From NCBI GenBank assembly GCA_001643675.2, contig LSRY02000030.1:372001-436000 (forward strand): DNA of 64,000 nucleotides, in the 5' to 3' direction. Each line of letters begins with the position of its first letter. Within the stretch, counting starts at the first letter, position 1. The translations under genes were made by a program, and so were the position numbers. Shown here piece after piece: positions 7,892-31,852 of the stretch. The stretch comes from Monocercomonoides exilis PA203. Its lineage: Eukaryota; Protista; Preaxostyla. The notes under the pieces were generated by a model, which worked only from the letters and a program-made list of their open reading frames with translations, was not told where the DNA came from and made no database searches.

Positions 7892-8034
7892 CCATTGTTA
7901 AGGTTTTGTTTTCATAACAGCAAAATTTGGTCTATGTGAACATAAATTTGATCGGAATATGAAATTTTTATTTTATTTGAAAATTAAACGTTTGCGACTT
8001 TTCAAAAAGAATTTCCCATGTGGAAAGTCTCGAT

Positions 8035-9934: not shown

Positions 9935-12900
9935 ATGCTGTCAGTGATGAGGATATTTGCTTTTTGCATTTATTTGCTACATGTGAATCTTATTGCTACA
10001 AAAGAAGACTTAAAGTGGATTGGAGTAAACATGAAAGAAGAAAAAGATTTCGAAATGAATGGTAATCTTATTCAGACCTACAAAATATTTTCAAATGATG
10101 GCTTTATGAATTATGAAGAAGATGGTGGAAGATTGATGGAAAAAACTAAAAAAAACGAAGTTCATGGAAGTATTTTTCAGAAAAATGAAGAAAAAAGCAA
10201 AGAAGAATTTGGAGGAGAAATTGGTATTTTGAAAAATGTGAATATTCAACAATTCAGCGAAATTGAGGGTTGCTTAGAATGCTTCAATTCATCAATCATG
10301 GAAATGAAACTGTTGATGAGAGAAAAAGGATCAAAAAGAATACTTATTGCAAAAAGAGGAAGCATTCTTTCAATGAGAGAGTGCATTCTTTTTGAAGGGC
10401 AACATTTATCTCCTTTTGAGTTAGAAGGGAGTTTTGGATCATTTGTGAACATTTCAATTCAGCAAAATGTTGAAGGTTTGAATATATTTTCTCCTCTTTT
10501 CACTTCTGAACAATTTAACAATGATATTTCAAAGTCTTCCATTATTTCGTTGAGTGAATCACATTTCTCGTCTTTTTGTGTTTCTTCTCCCCCCTTTCTG
10601 TCATCACCATCCATTCATCTTGTTTCCCTTTTTCATCTGAAATTTTTCAACATTTCATCAGCACCTGATACGTGCTCATCTCCAACCACAACATCAACCC
10701 AAACCACATGTCTTATGAATAGCTGCTCATTTTCTTCTGTTTTTGATGTGTATGATGGTGGGATTGTCACTTCCCTCAACAATCCATTGGCTTCCTTATC
10801 TGTTTCAAATACCTCATTCGTTTGGTGTTGTCGGACAAGAAATGTGAAATGCGAAGGAACTTCGGAGGTTTCGTTGAAACCAGACAGACAGAACGAAACA
10901 ACTGATGGAGCGAATGCATTTATTTGGTGCGAGTGGAACGGATCGAAGACAACAGGAACGAATGATTCGTGGATGGATATCACTTCAAATGGAGGAGCTA
11001 TTTGCATGTTTGAAAAATTAAACGCTATTGTTTCAATTGAACATTGTTTTTTCAATGATTGTTATGCAAATTATGATGGAGGAGGAATCATGTGTGCAAA
11101 TGTTTCTTCCATTCAGATAGCTAATAACACGTTCAATTCTTGTAATTCGAAAAGAAATGCTGGTGGAGGAATTTGCATTTATTCAATTTCATCATGCGTT
11201 CGGATCAGCGGATGTTATTTCGAAAATTGCAAAGCAAATAATTATGGAGGAGGATTATGCATTGATAATTTCAATACTTCAGGAACAATTTGTGTTGGAA
11301 CAGAAAATGGAGAAGTTAAGAGTGCATGCATATTTGATTGCAGTTTCACAACATGTTCAGTCACACACAATGGAGGCGGAGGCTTGTTTTGTCGAAAAGT
11401 GCCAGAACAATTCAAAATTAAGAGCATTCAGTTTATCTCATGTTCAGCATTTAGAGAGGGAGGAGGATTATGTTTGCATCCAAATCGAGCAACAGCACCT
11501 GATAATAAATTATATTGCTTCTTCTTATTATTTCATGAATGCAGTTACAGGGATGCAACTTATCCACGTGGAAATGATGCAATATATTACGACAATAACA
11601 ATTTGTACTTTGATTCTGGAAATCCATTCTATGAATGTTACACAACGAATGCAGATGATAAGAGGATCTGCTTTGCGTACAACTACTCGAATGCAGGTGC
11701 CTGGACATTTGATCAAACATCAAAAAAGGATTGGCTGAAAGACAAGACGATATATGTTTCAGTGAATGGGAGTGACGGATATGAGCTATGCGGGTCAAAT
11801 GAATCAAATCCATGTCTGACAGCGAAGAAAGCGTTTGAGATGTGTGAAGTGCAGATTAGCTTGGCAATCACACTGATGGAAGGGAATCACATAAGCGAGG
11901 CAACAACAATTGAGATTGGAGAGAAGAAGATTTCAGTCATTGGGAAAGGGAAAGATAAGAGTTCGATTGGAACACGAACCCTTTCATCAGCAAGAGCATT
12001 GTTCAGTGTCACCACAGGACACTTGGGAATGAGTCACTTGAAAGTTGATTGCAACTCAACAGCAGGAACTTCTCCGAGTGTGGTTGTGGTGTCTGACGGG
12101 AGTGGGTCACTCTCATTGGAAGATGTTTTGATCACCACGAGCAAAACAGGAGACTATGTGATATCATCATCAGTGTTTGTGGTGCCGCTGTCGCAGCTGT
12201 CGATGGTTGGTGTGGAGATCAAGGATATGAACATTTCTCAACCATTGTTCTCTGAGCCGGATCTATCTTCTTCTTCATTTTCTTCTTCTTCCCTTTTTTT
12301 GACAGCCACTTCATCTGGAGAGAGCACGCTGGCGAACTTAACAGTGAGGAATGTGAAGTTGACTGAAGGAGATGGGGTGGTTGTGGCAAAGAGTGTGGCA
12401 GAAGGGGAGACATTTGTTGTTCAGAATGCGACAATCGAGGATTGTGTGTGTGAGAATGGCAGTGGAGGAGGGATCAAGGTTGAGTTGGAAACAGATAAAA
12501 GCAAGCTCCAGGTTGAAGCAACAACAACAATCAAGAGATGCACAAGTGGCAAATATGGGGGAGGGATGATGCTGTATCTGGCTGACAACTCATTTGACTT
12601 CTCGATTGTATCAGTTGACTTTTCAGGGTGTTCTGCCTCATTGGGAGGGAATTATGTGTTTGTGAATGGGAGCGATTCAGCGAGCTGGGGAATAAGCTCC
12701 TCAACGCTGAATGTCCAGCATGATGAATCAAAATACAATGAGCTGGTGGGATATGATCGGAGTGACACAACAATGGGGCTGTTCCCACTGAATGTGTTTC
12801 TGGACAGATATCCAAGTGTAGCACATGTGGGGAAGGGGAAGGATGGGCTAGGTGGATACGACTCGTGGTTCTGTGGGTTTGATTATTATCCGTGTGCCAC

Positions 12901-15900
12901 CATCACGCATGCAGCGCAGGTGAGATGTGCAGACACAAACAAGAAGATCGAATTGGATTCGGGATTTGAGCTTGCTGAGGCAGTTGGAATGACAGATGGC
13001 CATGAATGGGAGATTTCATGTGCCACAAAAGGGATGGAGGTTGGTGTGAAAGCACCAGAGAATTTTGAGTCATCTTGTATGATTGAGGTTCAGAGCAAAT
13101 GTTCAATGAGAAACATCAAGTTCAGTATTCCATCTGCTCTGTCTGGTGCATCATCATCATCTCTGATCTCATCCAACTCCACACTCCTCACACTCACTGA
13201 CTGTTCTGTTGCTTGTTCCTCTGAGAATTCCATTGGATATTGTTTTGTGAATGTGATTGGAGGAAAAGTGAAAGTGGAGGGATTGGTGATCACAGAGACC
13301 TTGAGATTTGGAGAACATTCGCTGATTGAGTTTGGTGAAGGGGTGGAATCAGTTGTGTTTTGTGGGTGTGAGGTGAACAACATTGAGAAGAGAAGTGGAG
13401 ATGGGGGATGGGTGAGTGGAGTGGTTGGAGCAGAAAGAGGTGAGGGGAAGAATGGGATAATTGTGATTGAGACGTGTGCTGTTAAGAGGTGCAGGTGTGC
13501 ATGTGGAAGAGGAGGAGGGATGAGTGTTGTTGTGAAGGGGGAAGGGGGCGTTGTTGTGAATGGGAGTTGTGTGATTGATGGGTGTGAGGCGAAGGGTTCA
13601 GAGGAGAGTTCAGATGGGAGAAGTGAAGGGAGAGGTGGAGGGATGATGATTTTGATGGAGAGCAGGGATGGTTCAATGAAAATGGAATCTGGAAGAGAGG
13701 GTTTGTTTGGGGAGAATAACAAAGCTCAATTTGGGAAGGATGTGTTTGTTGAATGTGGTGGAGGAGTGTTGTTGGAGTGGAAAGTGAATGGGAGCTCATT
13801 TTCATTTTTTGATTTTGGTGTGATTCCAACAGATGTGTTGAAGTTGTGTGGGAGTGAGGATGGGAGAGAAGGGGAAGTGATTCCGCTGTTTGTGTATTTG
13901 TGTTCAATGGGAACAAAGCTGAGAGTTGATGGGAGAGGAGAGAGGGCACTGGATCAGAGCCATTGTGGGTTTGAGGAGTTTGGGTGTTTGACAATTGACT
14001 ATTGTGTTGGGAAGAGAGCAAGCAGCAATGTGAATGAAATCGAAGTTATCTCAGAATCATGGATAAAGAATGAGATGAAAGTGATTTCATTTGATTTGAG
14101 TGTTTCAGGGAAAGAAGAAGGGATGAAGGTGTTTGTGAGAGATGAAGGATCAATGAATCAAAACTGGATGATCGAGTGCACAAAATCATTTGAGATGGGT
14201 TATTTGTCATTTGTGCTGAATGAAGAAATGAATGGGAGGAGAAGTGGATTTATTTACTCATCATCATCATCATCAACCATCACAATCAGGAGTTGTTCAG
14301 TCACATTTGGAAATGATGAAATGATTGGATACAATGTGATATGTGTTGAGGGAGGAGGGCTGACTGTGAATGGATTTGTGATGGAAGTGGGAGTGAGAAT
14401 GAATGGGAAATCGCCTATTGTTGTTTCGAATGGAGTTGAATTGGAGATGAATGACAGCCGAATGAGTGGAGTGGAAGTTGTTGGTGGGAGTGGAGGAGGA
14501 GGATGTTTGAATGTGGAGATGGGAGTGAATGGGAATGTGAATGTTGAAGGATGCAATTTGTCATCAGCGTGTTCAGGGGGGAGTGGGATGAAAGGGGGAG
14601 GGATGAAGATATCAGTGGGGAAGGGAGGGAGGTTGGAAATGAAAGGAGTGAAATATTCAGGGTGTGAAGTGCCAAGAGAGGATGTTGAGGAGGGAGAGAG
14701 AGGAATGGGAGGAGGGATGTTTGCTGAACTTGCCAATCAAATGGGAACATTTGTGATGGAAGGGATGGAATTTGAGGGATGCAATGCGTGGAAAGGGAAG
14801 AATGTGTTTGTTTCGGGATGGGATCTGAGAGAGATTGTGAATGAGGAGCACTTCAAATGGGAGATGAGTTCAGAGGAGTTGGGATCATTGGATGAGCTGT
14901 GTGGATGGGAGAGAGCAAGCACAGATGAGGGATATGTGATTCCACTGGTTGTGTATTTGTGGAGGAACTGGAGTGGGGATGGGTTTGTTTCTCGAGAGAA
15001 AGGAGGAGACTTCAGTGGGTGTGGGTATTCAGAAGCACCATGCTCATCGATTGACCACTTGATATCACTTCGATATCCGACACTTGGAGAAAGGGAGACA
15101 CATATTGCCATTGTGGGATCTGGGTTGCTGAGCCATTCCATATCATTTTCATCATCAATTTCAGAGTCACCAAAAGTGGTGATTGAAGGGACAAAGAAAG
15201 GGACAGGGGTGACGATCAGTGATGAAGATGAGAATGGTTTGTCTGATGATGGTTCAATGATCTCCTCGAATGTGAGTCTGTCATTTGTGAATGTGTCATT
15301 CACCAAGCCATCCATCACAACCCATCATGAAGTGTTGATTGAATCATCTGGAACAAACACATTATTGTCTGTCTCTGACTGCTCATTTGGCCCAGGGAAG
15401 GGGGTGGCAGAAAGTTTTGGATACTGCTTGATGAGAGTGAATGGGGGAAGTGTATTTATTGAAAAGTGTTCGTTGAGTTTGATTTCAGAGTTGAAAGGGT
15501 TGATTGCGTTCAGTCCAAGTGCACATGAGGTGACACTTCAGAATGTGAACATCTCATTTGCTGATGTGACAGAAAGAAGCTTGATTTCGATGATGGAAGA
15601 GGATAACCAGATGAATGGGGAACAGAAGGTATTTTCAAATGGGAGCAAACCAGTTTTGAGGGTTGTTGGGTGTTCATTTGCGAACATCACGAATGAAAGG
15701 ACTGGAGCGAGTGTTGTTGATGTGGGATCATTTGAGGATGGGGTGGAGTGTGTGATGGATGAGTGTTCGATGTCGAGTTGCAAGAGTGGTTTGAGTGATG
15801 AAGGAGGGGGGATGAGAGTGGTGCTGAAGAGTGGGGAGTCGGTGTTAAAAGTGAATGGCAGCTCGTTTTCGATTTGCAAATGCTCGAGTGAAACAGGGTG

Positions 15901-18900
15901 TGGAGGAGGGCTGTTCATTGATGGGTCAGACCCACGTGCGAATTATGGAAATGAAAGTCCGATTCCGCCTCTGAATTTCAAGATTGTGAACATCCTGTTT
16001 GTGATGAATGAGGCACATGTGGGGAAAGACATATTTGTCAGATGCCACTCGATTGCTCACCAGATCAACGAAACACTGTTTGCGCTGAACTACAACCAGG
16101 AGTCACTGAACTCGAACAACTCGATCTGTGGGAGGGATGGTTGGAGCGAGGGAGATGTTGATCTGATCCCGCTGATCACATTCTATTATTCGGCACAGGT
16201 GTTTGTGAGTGGGAGAGGGAGTGATGGGAGGGGATGTGGGGCACAGAGCAACCCATGTGCGAGCATCGACTGTGGGGTTGAGCACATCCAAGAAGGGGTG
16301 ATGAATGGGATTCTGATTGATGGAGAAGGGTTTGTAAGGAAGGAGTGTGTGATTGGAGATCTGGTTGTGAATTCATGGAAAAAGACACAGGGGATTGTTC
16401 GGCTGAACTGCAAGATTGAGAAATCAGGTGAGAAGGATTGTGTGATGGAGTTTGTGAATGAATGTTCAGTGGAGAGGTGCTCATTCCAGTTTGAAGATGG
16501 ATTTGAGTCAACTCACAATTGTCTCATGAAAGTGAAGAATGGAATGACGAAAATACAAGAATGTGAATTCTTCTCTTCTCCAACAACAACAGTTGAGTTT
16601 ATGAAGTTGAACAGTTCAATTGTGAGTGTGGAAAGTGGAGAGCTGAAGATACTTGATTCAACATTCAGGGATATTCATTCAACAAGATCGGTGCTTTCAT
16701 TTTGTGAAGAATCAGAAGTGACAATTGATGAAGCAAGAATATCGAATATCGAATGTGAGGGAGATGTTGTGAGTGTTGGAGGGAAAGTGAAAGTGGAGAT
16801 GAAAGAGATGGAAGTTGAGAATGTGACTGTGATGTCAAAGGGGTGTGTGATTGGGATGGAAGATGCTGAGCAAGGTGTGAGTGTGGTGAACAGCTCATTT
16901 GGAATGTGTATGAATTCAGTTGATAAGGGAAGCATGATGCAGATCAGGAATTCCAAAAATGTGAGGATTGAGGCATGTGTGTTTGATGGAGAAATAAAAG
17001 ATGAAATAGTCAATGAAGAAAACAATAGAAAAGAAGGATTATGCAAATGGAATGGGTCATTAGTTGGCGTTGAGAAGAGCATAGTTGAGATGAGGGAAAC
17101 AACAATCAGAAATAGCAAGGGAGGTGGGCTGTGGGTGAGTGGAGGGAATGTGAAGATTGAGAAAGGAGAGTTTGAGAACAATAATCCATCGATTGAGGGA
17201 TATCCATCAGCTCGAAGGAATGCGATTTGTGAAGGGAATGGGGAGTTGAATGTTGTGAGTGTGAAAGGTGGAGATGGATGGAAGGACAACTCATCATTGT
17301 GGATATTGGATGAGGGATGCGAATTGGGAGGGATAGCAACTGAAAGAGGATCATCATTTTTCATCCCCATTTTGGAAGAGGTGAAGAATGTTTCTCAGCC
17401 AAATGGGGATGTGGAGTTGATGATTGTGGGAAAGTTGTTACTGCCATGTGATTCGTCGGTGAAGATGAGCATGAAAAATGGGGATGAAGAGGAGATTGTG
17501 AGAAAGGGGATTGAAGAAGAAGGGTTTGTGTCAGAGAATGAGATTCACTCAGTTATTTCATGTTCGGAATGGGAGAAAGTGAGAGAAGAGACAGAAGTGA
17601 GTGTGTGGATTGTGTTTGGAAAAGCAGACTCTCCTTCATCAACAGAGCGATTTATTGTGAAGAACAAGAGTGAAAGTGTTGGAAAAGAAGATGAAAAACT
17701 TGTTAAAGGAGAGAAAGAAGGAAAGTCTCATTGGTTGCTGATTGTTATAATCATGGCAGTTATTCTATTAATTGTTCTGATTGGATTTATTTTGTTTGTT
17801 GTCAGATGGAGTAAGCAAAAGAGAAGAACAAAGGAATTGGAAGAGATTGTGAATGACACGGTGAGAAAAGATCCAAAGCTGATTGAGATGACAACAATGG
17901 AGATGTCTCCAGAGGAGCAGTGGAGGAGAGCCGAGAAGGAGGCAGAGAAGAAGAATGAAGAGAAAATGAAGAAGAGGGTTTATGAGAAAAGCTTGGGACA
18001 TTCAGAGTCTTCAGAGCATCTTCTATCTGAGAGTGGCTCAACCGAATATATTTTGGGGAGAGATTCAGACAAAATACCTCAATGGATGCTGGAGAAAGTG
18101 GATGAGAAAGAAGAAGAGGAAACAAGAAAGAGAACACCATCACCATCAATTTCATCAACTTCAACAACAGATTCAGATTCAACATTTGTTCGATCGGAGA
18201 GTCTGTGTCCCGCCACCTCGTCGATGTCCAATCTGGTGGATGCAATGGCCTGTTCATCACCACATGAGAAGCTGATTGTGGATCTGAGGGATTCACTGTT
18301 CATGTTGTTGCATGGAAGAAATAAAACAAAGGAGATGGCGATTGGCACTCTGCAGGAGAGGGAGCAGACAGCTGCTCAGATCCTGTTCTGGGTGGCCAAT
18401 CTGGCACTCCACTCGTTTGATGAGATGGAAAATGGATTATCTTCCCTCTCCACTCTGAGTCCTCACATTGTACTGTTTTCTGAGCACATGGTGATCTGCA
18501 TCGTGATGCACTCTGACTTCTCGTCTGATGATGATTCAGACTCATCCTCCATCTCTTCATCAACAGTTGTGACATCTGCCAGTGATGATGATGATAGTGA
18601 TTCTCTGCCCTCGTCTGCCTTTGAGGATGATGAATACAACAGAAAAGAGTGTTTGAGGTGGATGGCACCAGAGCTACTGACAAACAAGAAGATGGGAGCA
18701 ACGAAGGAGTCGGTGGTATTCTCGATTGGGATGATGCTGTGGGAGTGCTTGACTCTGGAGATCCCGTTTGGAGAGTATGAAGGGGAAGTGGCTGGGCAGA
18801 AGATTGTGAATGGGGAGAGGCCGGATTTGTCAGTTGTGAAAAGTTTCACGATGAAAGGGATAATTGGGAAATGTATTGAAGAAAGTGCAGAAGAGCGGAC

Positions 18901-19048
18901 GGGGCTGGGGGATGTGAAGAGGGGGCTGACACAGTGTCTGCCAGCAGGGTCGCTGATCTTCACGATGACAGATGCGATGGACTATGTTGGAGAGTCATGT
19001 GCCGATGGAGGAAGCGAGTGTTTGGTGTCGAACACAGGAACAGAATGA
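9935..19048 (+). CDS. Giant receptor-like type-I membrane protein with beta-helix-like ectodomain and TKL-like pseudokinase (gene A, 3037 aa, intronless)
   Basis: Single 3037-aa ORF with an N-terminal hydrophobic signal, GG(G/A)(I/L/M) and FxxC/FxxN repeats and five V-x-x-G-x-D...CG...(P)C cap motifs. TM HWLLIVIIMAVILLIVLIGFILFVVRW+KQKRR is followed by kinase C-lobe motifs LRWMAPE, VFSIGMMLWECLTLEIPF and GERP. Confidence 0.9.
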   Translation: MLSVMRIFAFCIYLLHVNLIATKEDLKWIGVNMKEEKDFEMNGNLIQTYKIFSNDGFMNYEEDGGRLMEKTKKNEVHGSIFQKNEEKSKEEFGGEIGILKNVNIQQFSEIEGCLECFNSSIMEMKLLMREKGSKRILIAKRGSILSMRECILFEGQHLSPFELEGSFGSFVNISIQQNVEGLNIFSPLFTSEQFNNDISKSSIISLSESHFSSFCVSSPPFLSSPSIHLVSLFHLKFFNISSAPDTCSSPTTTSTQTTCLMNSCSFSSVFDVYDGGIVTSLNNPLASLSVSNTSFVWCCRTRNVKCEGTSEVSLKPDRQNETTDGANAFIWCEWNGSKTTGTNDSWMDITSNGGAICMFEKLNAIVSIEHCFFNDCYANYDGGGIMCANVSSIQIANNTFNSCNSKRNAGGGICIYSISSCVRISGCYFENCKANNYGGGLCIDNFNTSGTICVGTENGEVKSACIFDCSFTTCSVTHNGGGGLFCRKVPEQFKIKSIQFISCSAFREGGGLCLHPNRATAPDNKLYCFFLLFHECSYRDATYPRGNDAIYYDNNNLYFDSGNPFYECYTTNADDKRICFAYNYSNAGAWTFDQTSKKDWLKDKTIYVSVNGSDGYELCGSNESNPCLTAKKAFEMCEVQISLAITLMEGNHISEATTIEIGEKKISVIGKGKDKSSIGTRTLSSARALFSVTTGHLGMSHLKVDCNSTAGTSPSVVVVSDGSGSLSLEDVLITTSKTGDYVISSSVFVVPLSQLSMVGVEIKDMNISQPLFSEPDLSSSSFSSSSLFLTATSSGESTLANLTVRNVKLTEGDGVVVAKSVAEGETFVVQNATIEDCVCENGSGGGIKVELETDKSKLQVEATTTIKRCTSGKYGGGMMLYLADNSFDFSIVSVDFSGCSASLGGNYVFVNGSDSASWGISSSTLNVQHDESKYNELVGYDRSDTTMGLFPLNVFLDRYPSVAHVGKGKDGLGGYDSWFCGFDYYPCATITHAAQVRCADTNKKIELDSGFELAEAVGMTDGHEWEISCATKGMEVGVKAPENFESSCMIEVQSKCSMRNIKFSIPSALSGASSSSLISSNSTLLTLTDCSVACSSENSIGYCFVNVIGGKVKVEGLVITETLRFGEHSLIEFGEGVESVVFCGCEVNNIEKRSGDGGWVSGVVGAERGEGKNGIIVIETCAVKRCRCACGRGGGMSVVVKGEGGVVVNGSCVIDGCEAKGSEESSDGRSEGRGGGMMILMESRDGSMKMESGREGLFGENNKAQFGKDVFVECGGGVLLEWKVNGSSFSFFDFGVIPTDVLKLCGSEDGREGEVIPLFVYLCSMGTKLRVDGRGERALDQSHCGFEEFGCLTIDYCVGKRASSNVNEIEVISESWIKNEMKVISFDLSVSGKEEGMKVFVRDEGSMNQNWMIECTKSFEMGYLSFVLNEEMNGRRSGFIYSSSSSSTITIRSCSVTFGNDEMIGYNVICVEGGGLTVNGFVMEVGVRMNGKSPIVVSNGVELEMNDSRMSGVEVVGGSGGGGCLNVEMGVNGNVNVEGCNLSSACSGGSGMKGGGMKISVGKGGRLEMKGVKYSGCEVPREDVEEGERGMGGGMFAELANQMGTFVMEGMEFEGCNAWKGKNVFVSGWDLREIVNEEHFKWEMSSEELGSLDELCGWERASTDEGYVIPLVVYLWRNWSGDGFVSREKGGDFSGCGYSEAPCSSIDHLISLRYPTLGERETHIAIVGSGLLSHSISFSSSISESPKVVIEGTKKGTGVTISDEDENGLSDDGSMISSNVSLSFVNVSFTKPSITTHHEVLIESSGTNTLLSVSDCSFGPGKGVAESFGYCLMRVNGGSVFIEKCSLSLISELKGLIAFSPSAHEVTLQNVNISFADVTERSLISMMEEDNQMNGEQKVFSNGSKPVLRVVGCSFANITNERTGASVVDVGSFEDGVECVMDECSMSSCKSGLSDEGGGMRVVLKSGESVLKVNGSSFSICKCSSETGCGGGLFIDGSDPRANYGNESPIPPLNFKIVNILFVMNEAHVGKDIFVRCHSIAHQINETLFALNYNQESLNSNNSICGRDGWSEGDVDLIPLITFYYSAQVFVSGRGSDGRGCGAQSNPCASIDCGVEHIQEGVMNGILIDGEGFVRKECVIGDLVVNSWKKTQGIVRLNCKIEKSGEKDCVMEFVNECSVERCSFQFEDGFESTHNCLMKVKNGMTKIQECEFFSSPTTTVEFMKLNSSIVSVESGELKILDSTFRDIHSTRSVLSFCEESEVTIDEARISNIECEGDVVSVGGKVKVEMKEMEVENVTVMSKGCVIGMEDAEQGVSVVNSSFGMCMNSVDKGSMMQIRNSKNVRIEACVFDGEIKDEIVNEENNRKEGLCKWNGSLVGVEKSIVEMRETTIRNSKGGGLWVSGGNVKIEKGEFENNNPSIEGYPSARRNAICEGNGELNVVSVKGGDGWKDNSSLWILDEGCELGGIATERGSSFFIPILEEVKNVSQPNGDVELMIVGKLLLPCDSSVKMSMKNGDEEEIVRKGIEEEGFVSENEIHSVISCSEWEKVREETEVSVWIVFGKADSPSSTERFIVKNKSESVGKEDEKLVKGEKEGKSHWLLIVIIMAVILLIVLIGFILFVVRWSKQKRRTKELEEIVNDTVRKDPKLIEMTTMEMSPEEQWRRAEKEAEKKNEEKMKKRVYEKSLGHSESSEHLLSESGSTEYILGRDSDKIPQWMLEKVDEKEEEETRKRTPSPSISSTSTTDSDSTFVRSESLCPATSSMSNLVDAMACSSPHEKLIVDLRDSLFMLLHGRNKTKEMAIGTLQEREQTAAQILFWVANLALHSFDEMENGLSSLSTLSPHIVLFSEHMVICIVMHSDFSSDDDSDSSSISSSTVVTSASDDDDSDSLPSSAFEDDEYNRKECLRWMAPELLTNKKMGATKESVVFSIGMMLWECLTLEIPFGEYEGEVAGQKIVNGERPDLSVVKSFTMKGIIGKCIEESAEERTGLGDVKRGLTQCLPAGSLIFTMTDAMDYVGESCADGGSECLVSNTGTE

Positions 19049-22000
19049 AATTTGGGGAAGAGAGGGGATGAGGATGCTGATTGAGATGAATTGGATGAAA
19101 TGGGTGGATGAGTCTTGAAGCAGGGGGCTAATGTGAGTGTGCGTGGGGATGGGGTAAGGGAAGGAGAAAGGGAAGGAGATTGGGAAGGGGATGTGGGTGT
19201 GCAAAGTGGAGTGTGACGTTGCTGTCGCAGCGTGTTGAACTTTGCAAGAGGGAGCCGAACAGAAAGTGAAGGGCATGAGAGTGATGGGCAGGAAAAAGTT
19301 CAGTATCTGGAAATGTGCTTTATTCTGCAAGTGGAGAGAATCGGATGATCATTTCATTGATTGATTGATTGTGTGTGTATATTTTTCTTGTTTTTTTGTG
19401 TTTCATGTTTTATTTGAGAATTTTATTTTTTAACATTTTGTGTTTGGTTTGAGAGAAATACTCAGAATTGAATGGAGCAATTTTATTTTGAGAAATGAAT
19501 TTAATGAATATGTGTGAAAAGGTGACTTAATTCAATAAATAATTTTTTTTTAATATTCTGTATATGAAAATTTCAACTTTTTGAAAATGTTATTATTAAC
19601 CATTTTAATTAAACAAAAAATTGAAAAAAAAGGTTTTAAACTTATATTTAAATTATATCGAATTAAAATTAAATTCGTTTTTTATTAAGAGTCTTTGAAT
19701 GAATATGAAAAACAAAAAATGCTTCATTAATAATCCTATCTAGATAATTATTTTGATGTCTTGATAATATACACGTTACACATTCTTTTATTGTTCAGAT
19801 ATTATTCGGTTATGCGAATGTTTGCGCTTATCAATTCCACTTCCTAAGAAAAAAAGATAAGATAAGATAAGATTCAAATAAACTCAACTTTGTTTAACCT
19901 TCCAAGTTCAAGGCAAACTTTTTCTCCTATTTGTATATTTAATCACAAAAGAGATTGACTTCCATTCAATTCTGAGTATTTCTCTCAAACCAAACACAAA
20001 ATGTTAAAAAATAAAATTCTCAAATAAAACATGAAACACAAAAAAACAAGAAAAATATACACACACAATCAATCAATCAATGAAATGATCATCCGATTCT
20101 CTCCACTTGCAGAATAAAGCACATTTCCAGATACTGAACTTTTTCCTGCCCATCACTCTCATGCCCTTCACTTTCTGTTCGGCTCCCTCTTGCAAAGTTC
20201 AACACGCTGCGACAGCAACGTCACACTCCACTTTGCACACCCACATCCCCTTCCCAATCTCCTTCCCTTTCTCCTTCCCTTACCCCATCCCCACGCACAC
20301 TCACATTAGCCCCCTGCTTCAAGACTCATCCACCCATTTCATCCAATTCATCTCAATCAGCATCCTCATCCCCTCTCTTCCCCAAATTTCATTCTGTTCC
20401 TGTGTTCGACACCAAACACTCGCTTCCTCCATCGGCACATGACTCTCCAACATAGTCCATCGCATCTGTCATCGTGAAGATCAGCGACCCTGCTGGCAGA
20501 CACTGTGTCAGCCCCCTCTTCACATCCCCCAGCCCCGTCCGCTCTTCTGCACTTTCTTCAATACATTTCCCAATTATCCCTTTCATCGTGAAACTTTTCA
20601 CAACTGACAAATCCGGCCTCTCCCCATTCACAATCTTCTGCCCAGCCACTTCCCCTTCATACTCTCCAAACGGGATCTCCAGAGTCAAGCACTCCCACAG
20701 CATCATCCCAATCGAGAATACCACCGACTCCTTCGTTGCTCCCATCTTCTTGTTTGTCAGTAGCTCTGGTGCCATCCACCTCAAACACTCTTTTCTGTTG
20801 TATTCATCATCCTCAAAGGCAGACGAGGGCAGAGAATCACTATCATCATCATCACTGGCAGATGTCACAACTGTTGATGAAGAGATGGAGGATGAGTCTG
20901 AATCATCATCAGACGAGAAGTCAGAGTGCATCACGATGCAGATCACCATGTGCTCAGAAAACAGTACAATGTGAGGACTCAGAGTGGAGAGGGAAGATAA
21001 TCCATTTTCCATCTCATCAAACGAGTGGAGTGCCAGATTGGCCACCCAGAACAGGATCTGAGCAGCTGTCTGCTCCCTCTCCTGCAGAGTGCCAATCGCC
21101 ATCTCCTTTGTTTTATTTCTTCCATGCAACAACATGAACAGTGAATCCCTCAGATCCACAATCAGCTTCTCATGTGGTGATGAACAGGCCATTGCATCCA
21201 CCAGATTGGACATCGACGAGGTGGCGGGACACAGACTCTCCGATCGAACAAATGTTGAATCTGAATCTGTTGTTGAAGTTGATGAAATTGATGGTGATGG
21301 TGTTCTCTTTCTTGTTTCCTCTTCTTCTTTCTCATCCACTTTCTCCAGCATCCATTGAGGTATTTTGTCTGAATCTCTCCCCAAAATATATTCGGTTGAG
21401 CCACTCTCAGATAGAAGATGCTCTGAAGACTCTGAATGTCCCAAGCTTTTCTCATAAACCCTCTTCTTCATTTTCTCTTCATTCTTCTTCTCTGCCTCCT
21501 TCTCGGCTCTCCTCCACTGCTCCTCTGGAGACATCTCCATTGTTGTCATCTCAATCAGCTTTGGATCTTTTCTCACCGTGTCATTCACAATCTCTTCCAA
21601 TTCCTTTGTTCTTCTCTTTTGCTTACTCCATCTGACAACAAACAAAATAAATCCAATCAGAACAATTAATAGAATAACTGCCATGATTATAACAATCAGC
21701 AACCAATGAGACTTTCCTTCTTTCTCTCCTTTAACAAGTTTTTCATCTTCTTTTCCAACACTTTCACTCTTGTTCTTCACAATAAATCGCTCTGTTGATG
21801 AAGGAGAGTCTGCTTTTCCAAACACAATCCACACACTCACTTCTGTCTCTTCTCTCACTTTCTCCCATTCCGAACATGAAATAACTGAGTGAATCTCATT
21901 CTCTGACACAAACCCTTCTTCTTCAATCCCCTTTCTCACAATCTCCTCTTCATCCCCATTTTTCATGCTCATCTTCACCGACGAATCACATGGCAGTAAC

Positions 22001-25000
22001 AACTTTCCCACAATCATCAACTCCACATCCCCATTTGGCTGAGAAACATTCTTCACCTCTTCCAAAATGGGGATGAAAAATGATGATCCTCTTTCAGTTG
22101 CTATCCCTCCCAATTCGCATCCCTCATCCAATATCCACAATGATGAGTTGTCCTTCCATCCATCTCCACCTTTCACACTCACAACATTCAACTCCCCATT
22201 CCCTTCACAAATCGCATTCCTTCGAGCTGATGGATATCCCTCAATCGATGGATTATTGTTCTCAAACTCTCCTTTCTCAATCTTCACATTCCCTCCACTC
22301 ACCCACAGCCCACCTCCCTTGCTATTTCTGATTGTTGTTTCCCTCATCTCAACTATGCTCTTCTCAACGCCAACTAATGACCCATTCCATTTGCATAATC
22401 CTTCTTTTCTATTGTTTTCTTCATTGACTATTTCATCTTTTATTTCTCCATCAAACACACATGCCTCAATCCTCACATTTTTGGAATTCCTGATCTGCAT
22501 CATGCTTCCCTTATCAACTGAATTCATACACATTCCAAATGAGCTGTTCACCACACTCACACCTTGCTCAGCATCTTCCATCCCAATCACACACCCCTTT
22601 GACATCACAGTCACATTCTCAACTTCCATCTCTTTCATCTCCACTTTCACTTTCCCTCCAACACTCACAACATCTCCCTCACATTCGATATTCGATATTC
22701 TTGCTTCATCAATTGTCACTTCTGATTCTTCACAAAATGAAAGCACCGATCTTGTTGAATGAATATCCCTGAATGTTGAATCAAGTATCTTCAGCTCTCC
22801 ACTTTCCACACTCACAATTGAACTGTTCAACTTCATAAACTCAACTGTTGTTGTTGGAGAAGAGAAGAATTCACATTCTTGTATTTTCGTCATTCCATTC
22901 TTCACTTTCATGAGACAATTGTGAGTTGACTCAAATCCATCTTCAAACTGGAATGAGCACCTCTCCACTGAACATTCATTCACAAACTCCATCACACAAT
23001 CCTTCTCACCTGATTTCTCAATCTTGCAGTTCAGCCGAACAATCCCCTGTGTCTTTTTCCATGAATTCACAACCAGATCTCCAATCACACACTCCTTCCT
23101 TACAAACCCTTCTCCATCAATCAGAATCCCATTCATCACCCCTTCTTGGATGTGCTCAACCCCACAGTCGATGCTCGCACATGGGTTGCTCTGTGCCCCA
23201 CATCCCCTCCCATCACTCCCTCTCCCACTCACAAACACCTGTGCCGAATAATAGAATGTGATCAGCGGGATCAGATCAACATCTCCCTCGCTCCAACCAT
23301 CCCTCCCACAGATCGAGTTGTTCGAGTTCAGTGACTCCTGGTTGTAGTTCAGCGCAAACAGTGTTTCGTTGATCTGGTGAGCAATCGAGTGGCATCTGAC
23401 AAATATGTCTTTCCCCACATGTGCCTCATTCATCACAAACAGGATGTTCACAATCTTGAAATTCAGAGGCGGAATCGGACTTTCATTTCCATAATTCGCA
23501 CGTGGGTCTGACCCATCAATGAACAGCCCTCCTCCACACCCTGTTTCACTCGAGCATTTGCAAATCGAAAACGAGCTGCCATTCACTTTTAACACCGACT
23601 CCCCACTCTTCAGCACCACTCTCATCCCCCCTCCTTCATCACTCAAACCACTCTTGCAACTCGACATCGAACACTCATCCATCACACACTCCACCCCATC
23701 CTCAAATGATCCCACATCAACAACACTCGCTCCAGTCCTTTCATTCGTGATGTTCGCAAATGAACACCCAACAACCCTCAAAACTGGTTTGCTCCCATTT
23801 GAAAATACCTTCTGTTCCCCATTCATCTGGTTATCCTCTTCCATCATCGAAATCAAGCTTCTTTCTATCACATCAGCAAATGAGATGTTCACATTCTGAA
23901 GTGTCACCTCGTGTGCACTTGGACTGAACGCAATCAACCCTTTCAACTCTGAAATCAAACTCAACGAACACTTTTCAATAAATACACTTCCCCCATTCAC
24001 TCTCATCAAGCAGTATCCAAAACTTTCTGCCACCCCCTTCCCTGGGCCAAATGAGCAGTCAGAGACAGACAATAATGTGTTTGTTCCAGATGATTCAATC
24101 AACACTTCATGATGGGTTGTGATGGATGGCTTGGTGAATGACACATTCACAAATGACAGACTCACATTCGAGGAGATCATTGAACCATCATCAGACAAAC
24201 CATTCTCATCTTCATCACTGATCGTCACCCCTGTCCCTTTCTTTGTCCCTTCAATCACCACTTTTGGTGACTCTGAAATTGATGATGAAAATGATATGGA
24301 ATGGCTCAGCAACCCAGATCCCACAATGGCAATATGTGTCTCCCTTTCTCCAAGTGTCGGATATCGAAGTGATATCAAGTGGTCAATCGATGAGCATGGT
24401 GCTTCTGAATACCCACACCCACTGAAGTCTCCTCCTTTCTCTCGAGAAACAAACCCATCCCCACTCCAGTTCCTCCACAAATACACAACCAGTGGAATCA
24501 CATATCCCTCATCTGTGCTTGCTCTCTCCCATCCACACAGCTCATCCAATGATCCCAACTCCTCTGAACTCATCTCCCATTTGAAGTGCTCCTCATTCAC
24601 AATCTCTCTCAGATCCCATCCCGAAACAAACACATTCTTCCCTTTCCACGCATTGCATCCCTCAAATTCCATCCCTTCCATCACAAATGTTCCCATTTGA
24701 TTGGCAAGTTCAGCAAACATCCCTCCTCCCATTCCTCTCTCTCCCTCCTCAACATCCTCTCTTGGCACTTCACACCCTGAATATTTCACTCCTTTCATTT
24801 CCAACCTCCCTCCCTTCCCCACTGATATCTTCATCCCTCCCCCTTTCATCCCACTCCCCCCTGAACACGCTGATGACAAATTGCATCCTTCAACATTCAC
24901 ATTCCCATTCACTCCCATCTCCACATTCAAACATCCTCCTCCTCCACTCCCACCAACAACTTCCACTCCACTCATTCGGCTGTCATTCATCTCCAATTCA

Positions 25001-27423
25001 ACTCCATTCGAAACAACAATAGGCGATTTCCCATTCATTCTCACTCCCACTTCCATCACAAATCCATTCACAGTCAGCCCTCCTCCCTCAACACATATCA
25101 CATTGTATCCAATCATTTCATCATTTCTAAATGTGACTGAACAACTCCTGATTGTGATGGTTGATGATGATGATGATGAGTAAATAAATCCACTTCTCCT
25201 CCCATTCATTTCTTCATTCAGCACAAATGACAAATAACCCATCTCAAATGATTTTGTGCACTCGATCATCCAGTTTTGATTCATTGATCCTTCATCTCTC
25301 ACAAACACCTTCATCCCTTCTTCTTTCCCTGAAACACTCAAATCAAATGAAATCACTTTCATCTCATTCTTTATCCATGATTCTGAGATAACTTCGATTT
25401 CATTCACATTGCTGCTTGCTCTCTTCCCAACACAATAGTCAATTGTCAAACACCCAAACTCCTCAAACCCACAATGGCTCTGATCCAGTGCCCTCTCTCC
25501 TCTCCCATCAACTCTCAGCTTTGTTCCCATTGAACACAAATACACAAACAGCGGAATCACTTCCCCTTCTCTCCCATCCTCACTCCCACACAACTTCAAC
25601 ACATCTGTTGGAATCACACCAAAATCAAAAAATGAAAATGAGCTCCCATTCACTTTCCACTCCAACAACACTCCTCCACCACATTCAACAAACACATCCT
25701 TCCCAAATTGAGCTTTGTTATTCTCCCCAAACAAACCCTCTCTTCCAGATTCCATTTTCATTGAACCATCCCTGCTCTCCATCAAAATCATCATCCCTCC
25801 ACCTCTCCCTTCACTTCTCCCATCTGAACTCTCCTCTGAACCCTTCGCCTCACACCCATCAATCACACAACTCCCATTCACAACAACACTCCCTTCCCCC
25901 TTCACAACAACACTCATCCCTCCTCCTCTTCCACATGCACACCTGCACCTCTTAACAGCACACGTCTCAATCACAATTATCCCATTCTTCCCCTCACCTC
26001 TTTCTGCTCCAACCACTCCACTCACCCATCCCCCATCTCCACTTCTCTTCTCAATGTTGTTCACCTCACACCCACAAAACACAACTGATTCCACCCCTTC
26101 ACCAAACTCAATCAGCGAATGTTCTCCAAATCTCAAGGTCTCTGTGATCACCAATCCCTCCACTTTCACTTTTCCTCCAATCACATTCACAAAACAATAT
26201 CCAATGGAATTCTCAGAGGAACAAGCAACAGAACAGTCAGTGAGTGTGAGGAGTGTGGAGTTGGATGAGATCAGAGATGATGATGATGCACCAGACAGAG
26301 CAGATGGAATACTGAACTTGATGTTTCTCATTGAACATTTGCTCTGAACCTCAATCATACAAGATGACTCAAAATTCTCTGGTGCTTTCACACCAACCTC
26401 CATCCCTTTTGTGGCACATGAAATCTCCCATTCATGGCCATCTGTCATTCCAACTGCCTCAGCAAGCTCAAATCCCGAATCCAATTCGATCTTCTTGTTT
26501 GTGTCTGCACATCTCACCTGCGCTGCATGCGTGATGGTGGCACACGGATAATAATCAAACCCACAGAACCACGAGTCGTATCCACCTAGCCCATCCTTCC
26601 CCTTCCCCACATGTGCTACACTTGGATATCTGTCCAGAAACACATTCAGTGGGAACAGCCCCATTGTTGTGTCACTCCGATCATATCCCACCAGCTCATT
26701 GTATTTTGATTCATCATGCTGGACATTCAGCGTTGAGGAGCTTATTCCCCAGCTCGCTGAATCGCTCCCATTCACAAACACATAATTCCCTCCCAATGAG
26801 GCAGAACACCCTGAAAAGTCAACTGATACAATCGAGAAGTCAAATGAGTTGTCAGCCAGATACAGCATCATCCCTCCCCCATATTTGCCACTTGTGCATC
26901 TCTTGATTGTTGTTGTTGCTTCAACCTGGAGCTTGCTTTTATCTGTTTCCAACTCAACCTTGATCCCTCCTCCACTGCCATTCTCACACACACAATCCTC
27001 GATTGTCGCATTCTGAACAACAAATGTCTCCCCTTCTGCCACACTCTTTGCCACAACCACCCCATCTCCTTCAGTCAACTTCACATTCCTCACTGTTAAG
27101 TTCGCCAGCGTGCTCTCTCCAGATGAAGTGGCTGTCAAAAAAAGGGAAGAAGAAGAAAATGAAGAAGAAGATAGATCCGGCTCAGAGAACAATGGTTGAG
27201 AAATGTTCATATCCTTGATCTCCACACCAACCATCGACAGCTGCGACAGCGGCACCACAAACACTGATGATGATATCACATAGTCTCCTGTTTTGCTCGT
27301 GGTGATCAAAACATCTTCCAATGAGAGTGACCCACTCCCGTCAGACACCACAACCACACTCGGAGAAGTTCCTGCTGTTGAGTTGCAATCAACTTTCAAG
27401 TGACTCATTCCCAAGTGTCCTGT
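12014..27423. repeat. Giant inverted repeat: arms 12014-19476 and 19961-27423 (7463 bp each), 484-bp spacer
   Basis: Mirror coordinates sum to 39437 throughout (stops 19048/20389; inner ends 19476/19961; outer ends 12014/27423). The antisense ORFs in the track are duplicated with identical or nearly identical translations. Confidence 0.97.
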
Positions 27424-29466
27424 TGACACACTGAACAGCGCTCCAGTTGATGAAAGAAATTTCATTTCAATTACACTCTTCTCTTTGCCTCTCCCAATGA
27501 CCGAAATCTTCTTTTCTCTTATTTCGATAGTTGTAATCTCGCTTTGATGAATTCCTTCCAATAGCACAATTCTGTATGAACAATTTCTGAAACTTTTCTC
27601 AACTGAATGCAAGAGTGTGTGGCATGGTAGACTTTCCTCCAATCCGCAAATATCTTCATTATCATTGCCTTTGACACCAATGAAGCACGGATTGGTATGA
27701 ATCCCTTTCGAAAGCCATTCATCGGGATAATTCCAGGTTCCATTGAAGTATGTAACACGAAACTGTTTGGTGTTTGTTGAAAATGACTCAACAAACGGAG
27801 TTTGAGAAAGTCGCTTTGAATCGGGATCATAAAAATAAGAATCGTGACCCTTGCATTCATCAATTTCAACAGTTCTTGCACAGCATTCATGAAACATACA
27901 GAACCATATCAAACTTGGATTCTGATCATGAAACTCAAATTGTTCCATTGTTATTGCTCCTCCCGCTTTATCTCCAATGCATCTCAAAAAATTGCAGGAT
28001 CTGACAGAAAATCCTTTTGGCGAATAGTCAATTCTTTATGCTCCGCCCCACCCTGTCCCTGCATCATTGTTATCAAAGTTGCAATCCACTATTGTTCCAG
28101 AATTCTCATCACTTCCGTGACTAATGTTGAAATCATAGATGAAAAGGCAAGCTCCATGCTTTTCGCAACAACAATTATGAAATTGAGACTCAAAAATTTG
28201 AAAATAACAAATTGTTTTGTTGACGAATATTGCTCCTCCATCAATTTTTCCTATTTTGCATTCATTGAAATAACTTTTATCAACAATAAGACCTGTAATG
28301 TTGTTTATATAAATAGCTCCTCCTTGAGATTCATTTCCTGTGCATTTGTCGAAAATACAATTTGAAATGTTCAGAGATGCTTGCGGCTGATCGTGCAAAT
28401 ATATTGCTGCTCCGTTTGTGGCATTGCAGCCGCTCCACTCGCAGCTCTCAAATGTGTGTGACCCATTTCCAAGCACTTGTCTACCTATTTGTTTCCTTCC
28501 TTCATTTTCTGTGAAGTGCAGACGATTGCATTTTAAAAATGAATTATTCACAAAAAGCAGCGAAGCCAGTGGGAAATACATAGAATCCACAACTCCCCCA
28601 TAAATCACATCCTCAGCGAATACAAATGAGCAACTATCAATTTTTGTGAAACAGTCATTCTCAGATCCTCTAAATAATTTTGTTGGTGAAGCTTTGGTGA
28701 TGTTTGAGAAAGCGCACTTGAATAACATGATGCTCGATAAAGGCCCGTTGCACAAAAATGGTATTGGTGAAAGCAACACAGACGAAAATGTTGAGTGGCT
28801 TATTTACACTGCTCTGGACTCATTGACAGAAATATCATTCAGCGAAAAGACAAGTGAATGGAAAAGGGGTGTTGGCCCTTCGATAATGAGCGATATATTC
28901 ACAAAACTTGCTGAGCCCGTATGCAGTTCGATCGGAGATCTCTTTGATTCGGCTGCATGACAAATCTCACAGTTTTCAAAAGATAAACCAGAGCGCTCAC
29001 AAATTGATACTGCTGCCTCTCCTCCAGTTGAATTCAGCTGAAGAGATAACAGCAAAAGTGTAGAATTTTGAATAAAAAAATGGCTGATGGCGCGGCTTCT
29101 TGTGCAAGTGGAATCCAATAACCCATTTTGTAACGAAATTATATCTTTTTGCTTCACATTTAGTGGGTAATGTCTTTTCGCATTATTTCTGATATCAAAT
29201 CCACAAGTCAATTTAAAAACATTCATGGGCATCACCTTTTTCTCCTCTCCTCCTTCCTTATATTTTGTGTGCCAATCACATCTTATTTCATTTCTGAGCA
29301 AATATTGTAGGTTCTTGGACCTCATCATGTTTCCCTTTTCTGCTCTTGTTTCTGCTTTTTCATTTTTATCTCCCGCAAACTGCTCCTGATCGACATTTGT
29401 ACAACAAGTCACAATCGAAGCAATCAAAATGACAAATGTCAACACTTTTTGTGTGTTCTCGTTCAT
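20389..29466 (-). pseudogene. Paralogue B of the giant receptor pseudokinase; full-length frame interrupted by two in-frame TAA codons (28804-28806, 28036-28038)
   Basis: ORFs 28804-29520, 28036-28779 and 20389-27987 are all in one frame. ATG at 29466 starts the signal peptide MNENTQKVLTFVILIASIVTCC. The frame reads ...ESRAV*ISHSTFSS... and ...TGWGGA*RIDYSPKGF...; total length (~3025 codons) matches gene A. Confidence 0.75.
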
Positions 29467-31852
29467 TCTGCAAAGGGAAGAAACTTCTTCTTTTCTCTCA
29501 GGAATCCTTTTTTCCTTCAAAATGGGAGTTTTTGATCAATTCAATTATTCTTTTGGGAATGAAACAGATCTCAAAATGGTCTTTATTCCAAGTAACACAA
29601 TAAATTGGATATTTGATTTTTCATAAATTATCGCAACTCAGGCTGAAGAGATAAGCATACTCCAAATCCTTCGCATTATCAACATCAGTTTTCAACAACG
29701 AAGCTCAAAAAAGACAAATTAAAATGAAAAGAATCATATATGCTTGACTTAATAGAATATATACATGAATCTGCTCACTTGCTGTATTGAATGGGGTTCT
29801 TCAACTGAAACGAACGAATAAAAAAAGTGAGTATATTAATCAAATGGCATTGTGTTTATAAAACAAGACTTTTTCAGTTGAAATGCCGCAAACCAATTGA
29901 AAATACATCGTAATCACGAGGAGACAGAATATTTGGAGCTGATCCTGATGCAGTGAAAATACCGATGACAGGAAGAATCGCAGAATTAATGAAAAACGTA
30001 AGAAAGAGTGTGATTTTTAAGTTCTCATTCTTCTTCCTAATATGTGAAGTGCAACATGAGACCGATTCCAATTTCTTCGCTTTTCTGAAGCTGAAAATAG
30101 TATTTTTGATTTCAATATTTGTCCCTTAAGTATTTCCTCAAACACTTAAGTTTGAGTTTCTGAGGCTTCATGCACTTGTGAGAATCAAATGTTTTGTGAC
30201 AATTTCAAGAAATTCTTTCGATAGATGTCCTTGTTTCTGTATTTCTGGCATATCCCCTGTTTCAGCAGGAATTGCATCTCAAAAGATTTTTCATTGATCT
30301 GAGCCTATCAAAGAAACAAACTCCGCTTTTGTTATGTTGCATTTATTGTGTATTTTGAGGTTCTTGTGGAAGGTTCTGCTTGTGGAAGTGGAAGCTATTG
30401 GAAAATAAAAGCTATTTTTGTTTGTTTATTGTTCCGCACGAAAGAAAGGGGAATTCTGGTGATTGAGGCTGGTCAAAAATGCACAGACATGTGAATGGAA
30501 TGTTTTCAAAAGAGTATCTTTTTTGATATATTTTTCTTTCTTTCTTTTTCTTATTTTTGAACGCAAATTCTTTATCAGAAACGAGCATAAAGCATTGGAT
30601 GTCTGATGTTGTATTGAAGAAGATGTTCGTGTAAGCATGTTTTCCGATTTAGCAGACAAATGCGAGCAAATAACATATTTTTATTAAATTCAGTTCTATT
30701 CTTTGTGATATAAATCAGTTTTTGAAGATCAAAACAATTCACAACAATTACTGAAGAAGAAAGCGATTTGCCTGATTTTTTTATTGATTTTCTTTGAATA
30801 TGTTAATATCTTTGAATAAAAGATTATCTTGCTTTTGAGCGATTGCTTTGTTGAGGATGTTTCCATTTGTCAGTCTCATTTCATATTCTTCAGTCAAGTA
30901 GTTTGACAGCAACTGAGTTTCTTCAACAGAAGATGCTTCAATATTTTGATTGCCTTTGTAAACAAATACAGCTTTAACACATATTCTATTGGTGGTGATT
31001 GAAAAGAGCTGACAGATGAGCCAGCCAATCTGTCTTTTAATAGATAAACTACTTCAAATAGAAAACAATCTTTGTGGTTCAAAAAAATAAATCTGGCACC
31101 GTGAAGCAATTTCATTGCTGGGCGGAATGGAAGCGAATTGCATGTTTTGCGGAAAAACATATAAAGAAAAAAGGATGAAATTTGTGTTCATTGTGCAGAC
31201 AAAGATTGCTTGCATTGTTTGCAAAAGTGCTTTTAAAGAATGCAGCGTGAACAAAAATGGACAAAATATCCTAAATACGAGAACATTCACTTTGATAATG
31301 GAGCATCAATTATTCGGTTCATTGTTTTGCATTTTCTCCTTTGTTTTGAAGTTAGTTTTCAGTTTCTTAGTGGTAACAATTTTCAAAACAAAACATCCAA
31401 TGAAAAAGTTGATGATGAGTGTTCAATTGAATGAGATGAAAAGTTATAAAATCAAACTTTTTGAAGGCATTTAAATCTAAAAAATTAACTCAAAGACAAA
31501 ATTGCAAAAGATATGATACTTATACCTTGTTGCAAAATTTCAAAAAATCTATTCAAAAAAGAAAAAATATGCATTGAATCTACAAAATGGGAAAAAAAAT
31601 GTTGAAAATAACATTATACTCCATATAATGTACAATTATCAAAAAATAATAAAGTTGGAAATTATTTATTGCAAATAAATAGTTAATTATATCTTGGAAT
31701 CGTCATTTCGACGCAAGATATTCATTGGTTTTTTTTTTAAAAAAATTAAAGAAAGCTTTAAAAAGCTTAAATTTTACTAAAAATATTTTCATCTCGAAAG
31801 AATGAAAATGTCACTAGAAGAATGAATAATTGAATGTTCCCTTCATTCTGCT

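Follow-up and report, generated by a model that had tools for sequence, protein, structure and literature searches.

A near-identical gene palindrome in Monocercomonoides exilis and its probable origin by gene conversion between inverted paralogues

In primates, the arms of sex-chromosome palindromes stay alike through gene conversion between them (e.g., Rozen et al. 2003). [quoted passage not shown] 2010, PMC2996952). The authors preferred duplication as the explanation, and the term "gene conversion" occurs zero times in their text (PMC2996952). In yeast, inverted duplications were found to form after double-strand breaks by a fold-back (hairpin-primed) mechanism (PMC10622511). The "protein tyrosine kinase"/TKL family of M. 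exilis, to which the present genes belong, was described in PMC6759080 and PMC8767320; concerted evolution of the family via inverted pairs is mentioned in neither genome paper, and "palindrom" and "inverted" have 0 occurrences each in PMC8767320.

The window analysed here is a stretch of 64,000 nucleotides of M. exilis PA203 (contig LSRY02000030.1, positions 372,001 to 436,000), and all positions below are numbered from its first letter unless another contig is named. A repeat search followed by base-by-base comparison of one arm with the reverse complement of the other delimited two arms of 7463 bp each (Table 1), which are identical at 7458/7463 positions (99.93%), far above chance level, with no indels and five mismatches, all of them transitions. 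Silent and non-coding sites share in the near-perfect identity; with the last base of the gene A stop codon at 19048, each arm includes 428 bp of non-coding 3′ sequence. The arms are separated by an asymmetric spacer of 484 bp with 21.9% GC (19477–19960), and the two open reading frames lie 1.34 kb apart. Beyond the outer arm edge, similarity continues without gaps for another 137 bp, to 11877/27560. The tail-to-tail palindrome, the shared 428 bp and the sharp end at the AT-rich spacer had all been proposed from the letters of the sequence, and the comparison reproduced each of them exactly. The five differences listed at that time, by a count presented as incomplete, turned out to be the full set, and the accompanying amino-acid changes (G/S, G/R and T/I) are visible in the translations of genes A and B.

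Table 1. Coordinates of the palindrome, its genes and related features. Positions refer to the window, except for the last row, in which the contig is named.
Feature	Position	Strand	Description	Basis
Gene A	9935..19048	+	intact 3037-codon ORF	translation, profile match, homologue alignment
Outer shoulder of A	11877..12013	+	patch 11969–12013 strongly diverged from every copy compared	
Arm A	12014..19476	+	3′ 77% of gene A plus 428 bp 3′ non-coding DNA	repeat search, base comparison
Five differing sites	13547..15570	+		arm comparison and alignment with other family copies
Left spacer	19477..19765	.	AT-rich, single-copy in genome (matches itself only), not self-complementary	
Right spacer	19766..19960	-	gene B's own old 3′ far flank; poly(A) motif	
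Arm B	19961..27423	-		repeat search, base comparison; short-read contig over inner junction
Gene B	20389..29466	-	chimeric, head-disabled partner of gene A	translation, family alignment
Outer shoulder of B	27424..27560	-	un-homogenised A-type body, 73% identical to A 11877–12013	
Head of B and about 1.5 kb upstream	27548..30999	-	other subfamily, 79–80% identical to loci on contigs C60 and C63	
Sister palindromes, same family	C21:841134-861941; C80:1311000-1333454; C53:343353-353000; C71:115000-124597			

Genes A and B encode giant surface-receptor-like membrane proteins of the "protein tyrosine kinase"/TKL family, the largest family of M. exilis, with 554 homologues in this species. The predicted protein of gene A starts with a signal-peptide-like N-terminus, followed by an ectodomain of about 2590 aa built of GGG/GGA repeats (beta-helix-like), a single transmembrane segment and a cytoplasmic tail that bears only the C-lobe of a kinase domain. 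This C-lobe matches PF07714 with an E-value of 6.8e-09 over profile positions 161–255 of 258. The protein is 81% identical to M. exilis MONOS_9664 over 99% of its length, and an exact-protein look-up returned no record of it in other assemblies. At the DNA level, gene A is 85–86% identical to copies on contig C21, starting at window position 9893.

Gene B has a different history. Its reading frame is open across 20389–27987, and its head contains in-frame TAA codons at 28036–28038 and 28804–28806. Both lie in frame within aligned coding motifs, which rules out introns that would mask them. In the public annotation, B is a 2339-aa model whose start codon is the ATG at 27408, within arm B. The head joins the A-type body in frame at a short conserved motif (27548–27560), and its dN/dS against the C63 head is about 0.31. 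Gene B is a chimera older than the arm identity, with a C60/C63-type head on a body and 3′ flank of the A/C21 type.

An identity of this degree could be produced by the assembly itself, either from a single copy or from diverged paralogues that were made identical by Canu correction and Pilon. The assembly is ONT-based and went through ten rounds of Pilon, multi-copy regions were polished unevenly according to its authors, and copies of this family number hundreds at 85–90% identity. In addition, contig depth at the five differing sites is dominated by paralogues, and given this depth the contigs provide no confirmation of the five variants, which could be allelic variants or polishing leftovers. 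However, the locus lies in the middle of its contig (380–400 kb into 1.2 Mb), its two heads and its outer flanking genes differ, and the spacer consists of unique genomic DNA in which no adapter-like sequence was found. A 387-nt contig from an independent 2016 short-read run covers 19849–20236 with zero differences and thereby links the spacer to 276 nt of arm B. The spacer is further tiled by 2022 contigs (19513–19989), and the A-side junction at 19476/19477 has depth coverage only, with no bridging contig among those listed. A divergence of 10–25% is moreover beyond what polishing could remove, and the sister palindromes display divergence gradients of the substitution type. An artefact of assembly or polishing is therefore quite improbable. 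The differing heads and flanks, the unique spacer and the bridging contig make a fold-back artefact unlikely, and an ONT fold-back read in particular was rejected because the spacer is asymmetric, the heads differ and a short-read contig crosses the junction of spacer and arm B. The palindrome looks real as assembled. Isomers with a flipped spacer share identical local junctions and are distinguishable only by reads longer than about 4–7.5 kb.

The spacer also bears on mobile elements. Its self-complementarity score equals that of shuffled sequences, and a MITE or another hairpin-forming multi-copy element at the centre was ruled out because the spacer is single-copy and not self-complementary. 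A DNA transposon (Merlin) whose giant terminal inverted repeats form the arms is scarcely credible: a transposase cannot fit into 484 bp, the outer edges are not element termini but lie in frame within homologous coding sequence, and the gene tails point inwards, running into family-type 3′ flank. A Merlin element with long terminal repeats was rejected on the lack of room for a transposase and on the absence of other copies of the spacer.

The evidence on the origin of the identity comes from the two ends of the arms. Beyond both ends, B retains diverged collinear family sequence: outwards, 137 bp that are 73% identical to A, and inwards, about 195 bp of 3′ far flank that are about 72% identical to the C21 copies. 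The inner piece is the right part of the spacer; it runs collinear with C21-subfamily 3′ flanking sequence, and nothing on the A side corresponds to it. The family-type 3′ flank of gene A ends at 19476, the same point as arm A. On the outer side, the last 45 bp of the shoulder of B are 91–93% identical to the C21 copies (41–42/45), and this identity falls to 34/46 across the edge. Over the same stretch, A is 64–67% identical to the C21 copies (29–30/45), then 34/46, and thus stays level. A switch of ancestry in B at the outer edge, with A level, is the signature of a recipient. Together with the diverged sequence of B at both ends, this switch points to gene conversion between old inverted paralogues.

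The principal alternative is a recent de novo inverted duplication, in which a broken end folded back or switched template, one arm was copied backwards, and the product was resolved by recombination inside a paralogous gene, with no earlier inverted pair at the site. The family homology of A stops at the arm end, as it would at a novel junction, the ancestry of arm B is contiguous with its far flank, short-spacer palindromes are frequent in the M. exilis genome, and in yeast there is a precedent for fold-back inverted duplications resolved in dispersed repeats (PMC10622511). However, neither arm is novel at both ends, since the outer continuation of A is ancestral, as is the inner one of B. 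Homology extends through the 137-bp shoulders in spite of 27% divergence, and diverged, collinear, in-frame shoulders argue against a new duplication into naive DNA, which leaves none. The ancestry switch of B at the outer edge also counts against a de novo duplication, and the spacer is neither hairpin-forming nor a repeated element. Overall, a de novo origin is rather unlikely.

We consider it likely, if well short of assured, that the locus is a real pair of old inverted paralogues whose arms were homogenised by a recent non-reciprocal exchange, probably from A to B. The arm identity would then probably be the product of recent gene conversion of A into B, a direction that is read from one 45-bp window. 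From the structure, its boundaries and the shoulders, we infer a repair mechanism and its timing as follows. Gene B would already have been chimeric before the exchange, its C60/C63-type head having been fused long ago to a body of the A/C21 type. A homologous, non-reciprocal exchange of recent date, perhaps one of several, may then have overwritten all pairable sequence between the copies, with a tract from the diverged patch of gene A (11969–12013), which forms the outer edge of the identity, to the end of the family-type 3′ flank of A at 19476. Heterology at both ends would block branch migration or heteroduplex extension and so produce the two sharp tract edges. The inner edge is the point at which A loses family homology, and a fold-back junction would predict the same. 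Since the exchange, about five point differences would have arisen, each private to one arm.

These differences lie at arm A positions 13547, 13549, 14309, 15526 and 15570. Alignment with other family copies places the derived state in A at 13547 and 13549 (one codon) and in B at 14309 and 15526, and it is ambiguous at 15570. The private alleles occur in no third copy in the genome, which rules out micro-conversion from a third party as their source; private alleles on both arms without such a donor fit mutation after homogenisation. Their location within 2 kb is only weakly unusual, with an order-statistic estimate of p about 0.02 for five sites or about 0.06 for four events, and no conclusion is drawn from it.

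The original prediction had described the conversion as very recent or ongoing. Recent non-reciprocal copying, as opposed to a plain new duplication, is supported by the diverged collinear ends of B; for ongoing conversion, the sister palindromes provide a suggestion only. When other convergent pairs of the family were sampled, all seven (7/7) proved to be palindromes with short asymmetric spacers. The sister palindromes share the architecture of the present locus, i.e., convergent family genes around an asymmetric AT-rich spacer of about 84–840 bp, with arms that are 95.9–99.8% identical. The nearest relative of A and B is the pair on C21, in which one partner likewise has a different head; its mismatches per kb are 0 over the inner 5 kb, then 4–12, then 249. 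Such graded arm identity suggests that conversion is ongoing in the family. Palindromes of this type are common in the M. exilis genome and of a known kind.

The sequence was also expected, in the original prediction, to yield a multi-kb hairpin dsRNA upon read-through. At least four loci with a Piwi domain (Argonaute-like) are present in the genome, so that silencing is conceivable in principle, and read-through of the spacer would make a hairpin RNA geometrically possible. However, two RNA runs gave no contigs across 18882–20010, i.e., the 3′ UTR and spacer, and for both genes canonical poly(A) motifs first occur within the spacer, before the partner arm (at 19534–19542 downstream of A and at 19787–19792 downstream of B), so that the predicted 3′ ends of A and B lie about 190 nt apart and do not overlap. 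The expectation of a long hairpin thus found no support in these data. That the palindrome is kept as a source of hairpin RNA that silences the family by RNAi is compatible with any origin, but very improbable, as the disabled head of gene B and the number of similar palindromes fit a by-product of repair. There is also only a slight chance that an intact gene beside a head-dead partner is a selected oxymonad arrangement, in which the silent arm might act as a protected template for repair or diversification of the expressed gene, or as the antisense half of a hairpin. RNAi-based control has been proposed for Giardia VSPs, and the antisense-hairpin reading resembles it; if true, this reading would imply control over which family members are expressed.

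Under the preferred explanation, gene conversion, the locus is a clean natural example of long-tract (at least 7.5 kb) conversion between inverted paralogues, in which both tract ends are explicable by loss of pairing and a disabled gene copy was refreshed from its working neighbour. Taken as a single locus, it holds no surprise for a specialist. Together with the sampled palindromes, it suggests concerted evolution of the largest M. exilis gene family via inverted pairs, which, if true, affects how the 46% "repeat" fraction of the genome, the family copy number and the family phylogeny are read.

In comparison with known systems, the fold-back duplications of yeast resemble the M. exilis locus in that the spacer is short and the outer end was resolved within homologous repeats, but under the fold-back model one arm should be entirely original and the other entirely new, and short inverted repeats should bound the spacer, neither of which is seen here (PMC10622511). 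The analogy that the original prediction drew with Y-chromosome palindromes is a fair one. The primate palindromes are likewise gene-bearing, with arms at least 99.9% identical, a short unique spacer and sharp edges, and their identity also reaches silent and non-coding sites. However, primate arms are between 9 kb and 1.45 Mb long and contain complete testis genes, whereas the M. exilis arms end inside genes, and conversion in primates was demonstrated by cross-species comparison, whereas the evidence in M. exilis comes from one genome. The VSP pairs of Giardia belong to an unrelated protein family, are identical over whole open reading frames and lie 2.2–3.8 kb apart, in contrast to M. exilis, in which sharing is confined to the 3′ 77% and the heads come from different subfamilies, one of them disabled (PMC2996952). 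Nevertheless, both are found in metamonads, in a large surface-protein family and in tail-to-tail orientation (in Giardia also head-to-head), and in both the flanking identity ends abruptly past the stop codon, after 318–559 bp in the tail-to-tail pairs of Giardia and after 428 bp in M. exilis (PMC2996952).

A repeat search of the window returned a single inverted pair (11877-19476 / 19961-27560), its arms lying 484 nt apart. A base-by-base walk from the spacer encountered five mismatches out to 12014/27423 (A positions 15570, 15526, 14309, 13549 and 13547), all of which are transitions, with 0 indels; going outward, dense mismatches start at 12013/27424. The coordinates, 7463-bp arms, spacer length and count of five differences in the original prediction were all reproduced exactly by these two procedures, and the three amino-acid changes between the arms were seen in both translations.

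A fold-back read artefact would predict mirror symmetry to the centre and identical flanks. However, the spacer consists of genomic DNA and is asymmetric, the heads (the 5′ gene parts outside the arms) and the neighbouring genes differ between the two sides, and the locus lies mid-contig. A 387-nt Logan contig from a 2016 run spans 19849-20236, from spacer into arm B, with 0 differences, and Logan contigs from a 2022 run tile 19513-19989; the A-side spacer junction is covered by depth only. The palindrome adjoins two ABC genes (see table), showing that the B side is flanked by ordinary single-copy-type genes.

The edges of the identity tract bear on its origin. At the outer edge, collinearity and reading frame are preserved between A and B for 137 bp past the tract, at just 73% identity. 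Compared with the copies on C21, another contig of this genome, the 45 bp immediately outside the tract match at 41-42/45 in B and 29-30/45 in A, whereas the 46 bp immediately inside match at 34/46 in both. The ancestry of B thus switches at this edge while that of A is constant, suggesting that B was probably the recipient of the copied tract (A to B), as judged from this 45-bp stretch. At the inner edge, the family-type 3′ flank persists in B for ~195 bp (19960 to 19766) at ~72% identity, and in A all family homology is gone within ~23 bp of 19476; the remainder of the spacer (19477-19765) is single-copy, and the spacer lacks self-complementarity. Old homologous sequence therefore lies on both sides of the tract in B, which argues against a new copy having been inserted into unrelated DNA and indicates homologous overwrite of an existing paralogue. 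The tract is the entire interval where A and B could pair, as would arise if heteroduplex extension or branch migration halted at heterology.

At the five differing sites, the derived state is in A at 13547 and 13549 (one codon) and in B at 14309 and 15526, and 15570 is ambiguous. These alleles are carried by no other copy in the genome (82.3 Mb in 101 contigs searched), and the differences fit mutations after homogenisation. Allelic variation or polishing noise is another possible source; the ONT assembly (PMC8767320) went through Canu, Nanopolish and ten rounds of Pilon, and contig depth at these sites is dominated by paralogues.

Gene A matches the C21 copies at 85-86% DNA identity over its full length, starting at 9893. 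Gene B matches them solely from 27560 to 19786. Its head plus 1.5 kb upstream (27548-30999) instead shares 79-80% identity with two loci, on C60 and C63, that are otherwise unrelated at the DNA level in their bodies. The switch keeps the reading frame and falls at 27548-27560, in a short motif that both subfamilies have conserved, joining a C60/C63-type head to an A/C21-type body. This junction is an older recombinational head-swap, the source of the hybrid gene. In-frame TAA codons lie in the B head at 28804-28806 and 28036-28038, both within aligned coding motifs, and the public gene model (2339 aa) begins at ATG 27408, within the arm. The head has dN/dS ~0.31 against C63, suggesting that it was a working gene through most of its history.

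Features of the locus and its relatives (C numbers denote contigs of the same genome, the window being C26:372001-436000; unprefixed coordinates are window positions)
Feature	Location	Strand	Remark
Gene A	9935-19048	+	3037-codon ORF without interruption
Third giant family member	49920-62318	+	4132-codon ORF
ABC-transporter gene	31853-35662	-
ABC ATPase fragment	41184-42533	+
Quasi-palindrome	7388-8018
Quasi-palindrome	43540-44182
Palindrome of closest A/B relatives	C21:841134-861941		20.9 kb; spacer ~95 bp
Palindrome of family genes	C53:343000-352999
Palindrome of family genes	C53:382000-391999
Palindrome of family genes	C80:1311000-1334999
Palindrome of family genes	C80:1428000-1437999
Palindrome of family genes	C80:1596000-1605999
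Palindrome of family genes	C71:115000-124999
Convergent family pair	C26:832647-846444
Piwi-domain locus	C28:121800-122711
Piwi-domain locus	C47:1987965-1989062
Piwi-domain locus	C47:1301934-1303028
Piwi-domain locus	C8:157110-157766

Seven further convergent family pairs, picked for equal scores on opposite strands, are palindromes in 7/7 cases, with asymmetric spacers of ~84-840 bp and arms 95.9-99.8% identical. In the C21 palindrome one gene is full-length, and its partner has a different head from the position corresponding to window 10559 onward. Arm mismatches there number 0 per kb over the innermost 5 kb, 4-12 per kb (~1%) between 5 and 9 kb, and 249 per kb (~25%) farther out. The six on C53, C80 and C71 have arms 97.8-99.8% identical and spacers of ~84-420 bp, also asymmetric; most continue past the compared stretch, and for these the tabulated coordinates are not full sizes. 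Their arm differences include many indels, possibly from uneven polishing. Another convergent pair on the window's own contig scores 94% versus 91% to the query over one 121-bp probe, and its arms therefore appear diverged. The third member's tail (60368-62053) is 88.8% identical, inverted, to that of gene B (20615-22297). Two quasi-palindromes of ~640 bp each, self-complementary at 74-77%, may be fold-back elements.

All protein homologues found (554/554) are from M. exilis. The genes are assigned to the "protein tyrosine kinase"/TKL family, the largest in this species, which overlaps the "unclassified repeats" of its genome (PMC6759080, PMC8767320). Gene A begins with a signal-like N-terminus, followed by a GGG/GGA-repeat ectodomain and a single membrane span; its tail matches the kinase profile in the C-lobe only, a match also seen in the third member. 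Pfam Beta_helix is present in some homologues.

The proposal that read-through hairpin dsRNA silences the family found no support. No RNA contigs cover 18882-20010 in two metatranscriptome runs. Neither M. exilis poly(A) motif (AAUAAA, AAAUAA) occurs in the 428-bp arm flank; the first plus-strand occurrence is at 19534 and the first minus-strand one at 19792, placing the predicted 3′ ends ~190 nt apart, non-overlapping. Given four Piwi-domain (Argonaute-like) loci in the genome, the hairpin-RNA proposal is possible in principle; the text of the 2019 genome paper contains neither Argonaute nor Dicer (PMC6759080).

The palindrome has no demonstrated function beyond concerted evolution. Its mechanistic analogue is the primate sex-chromosome palindromes. 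Palindromes and inverted repeats are not mentioned in the M. exilis genome paper (PMC8767320). The nearest published analogue is in Giardia, where 14 VSP gene pairs are inverted and identical, and their flanks cease to be identical at an abrupt point 139-729 bp away from the ORFs (PMC2996952). The A/B locus belongs to this known kind (inverted identical pairs, or palindromes) and is a well-bounded example, one of many in the genome.
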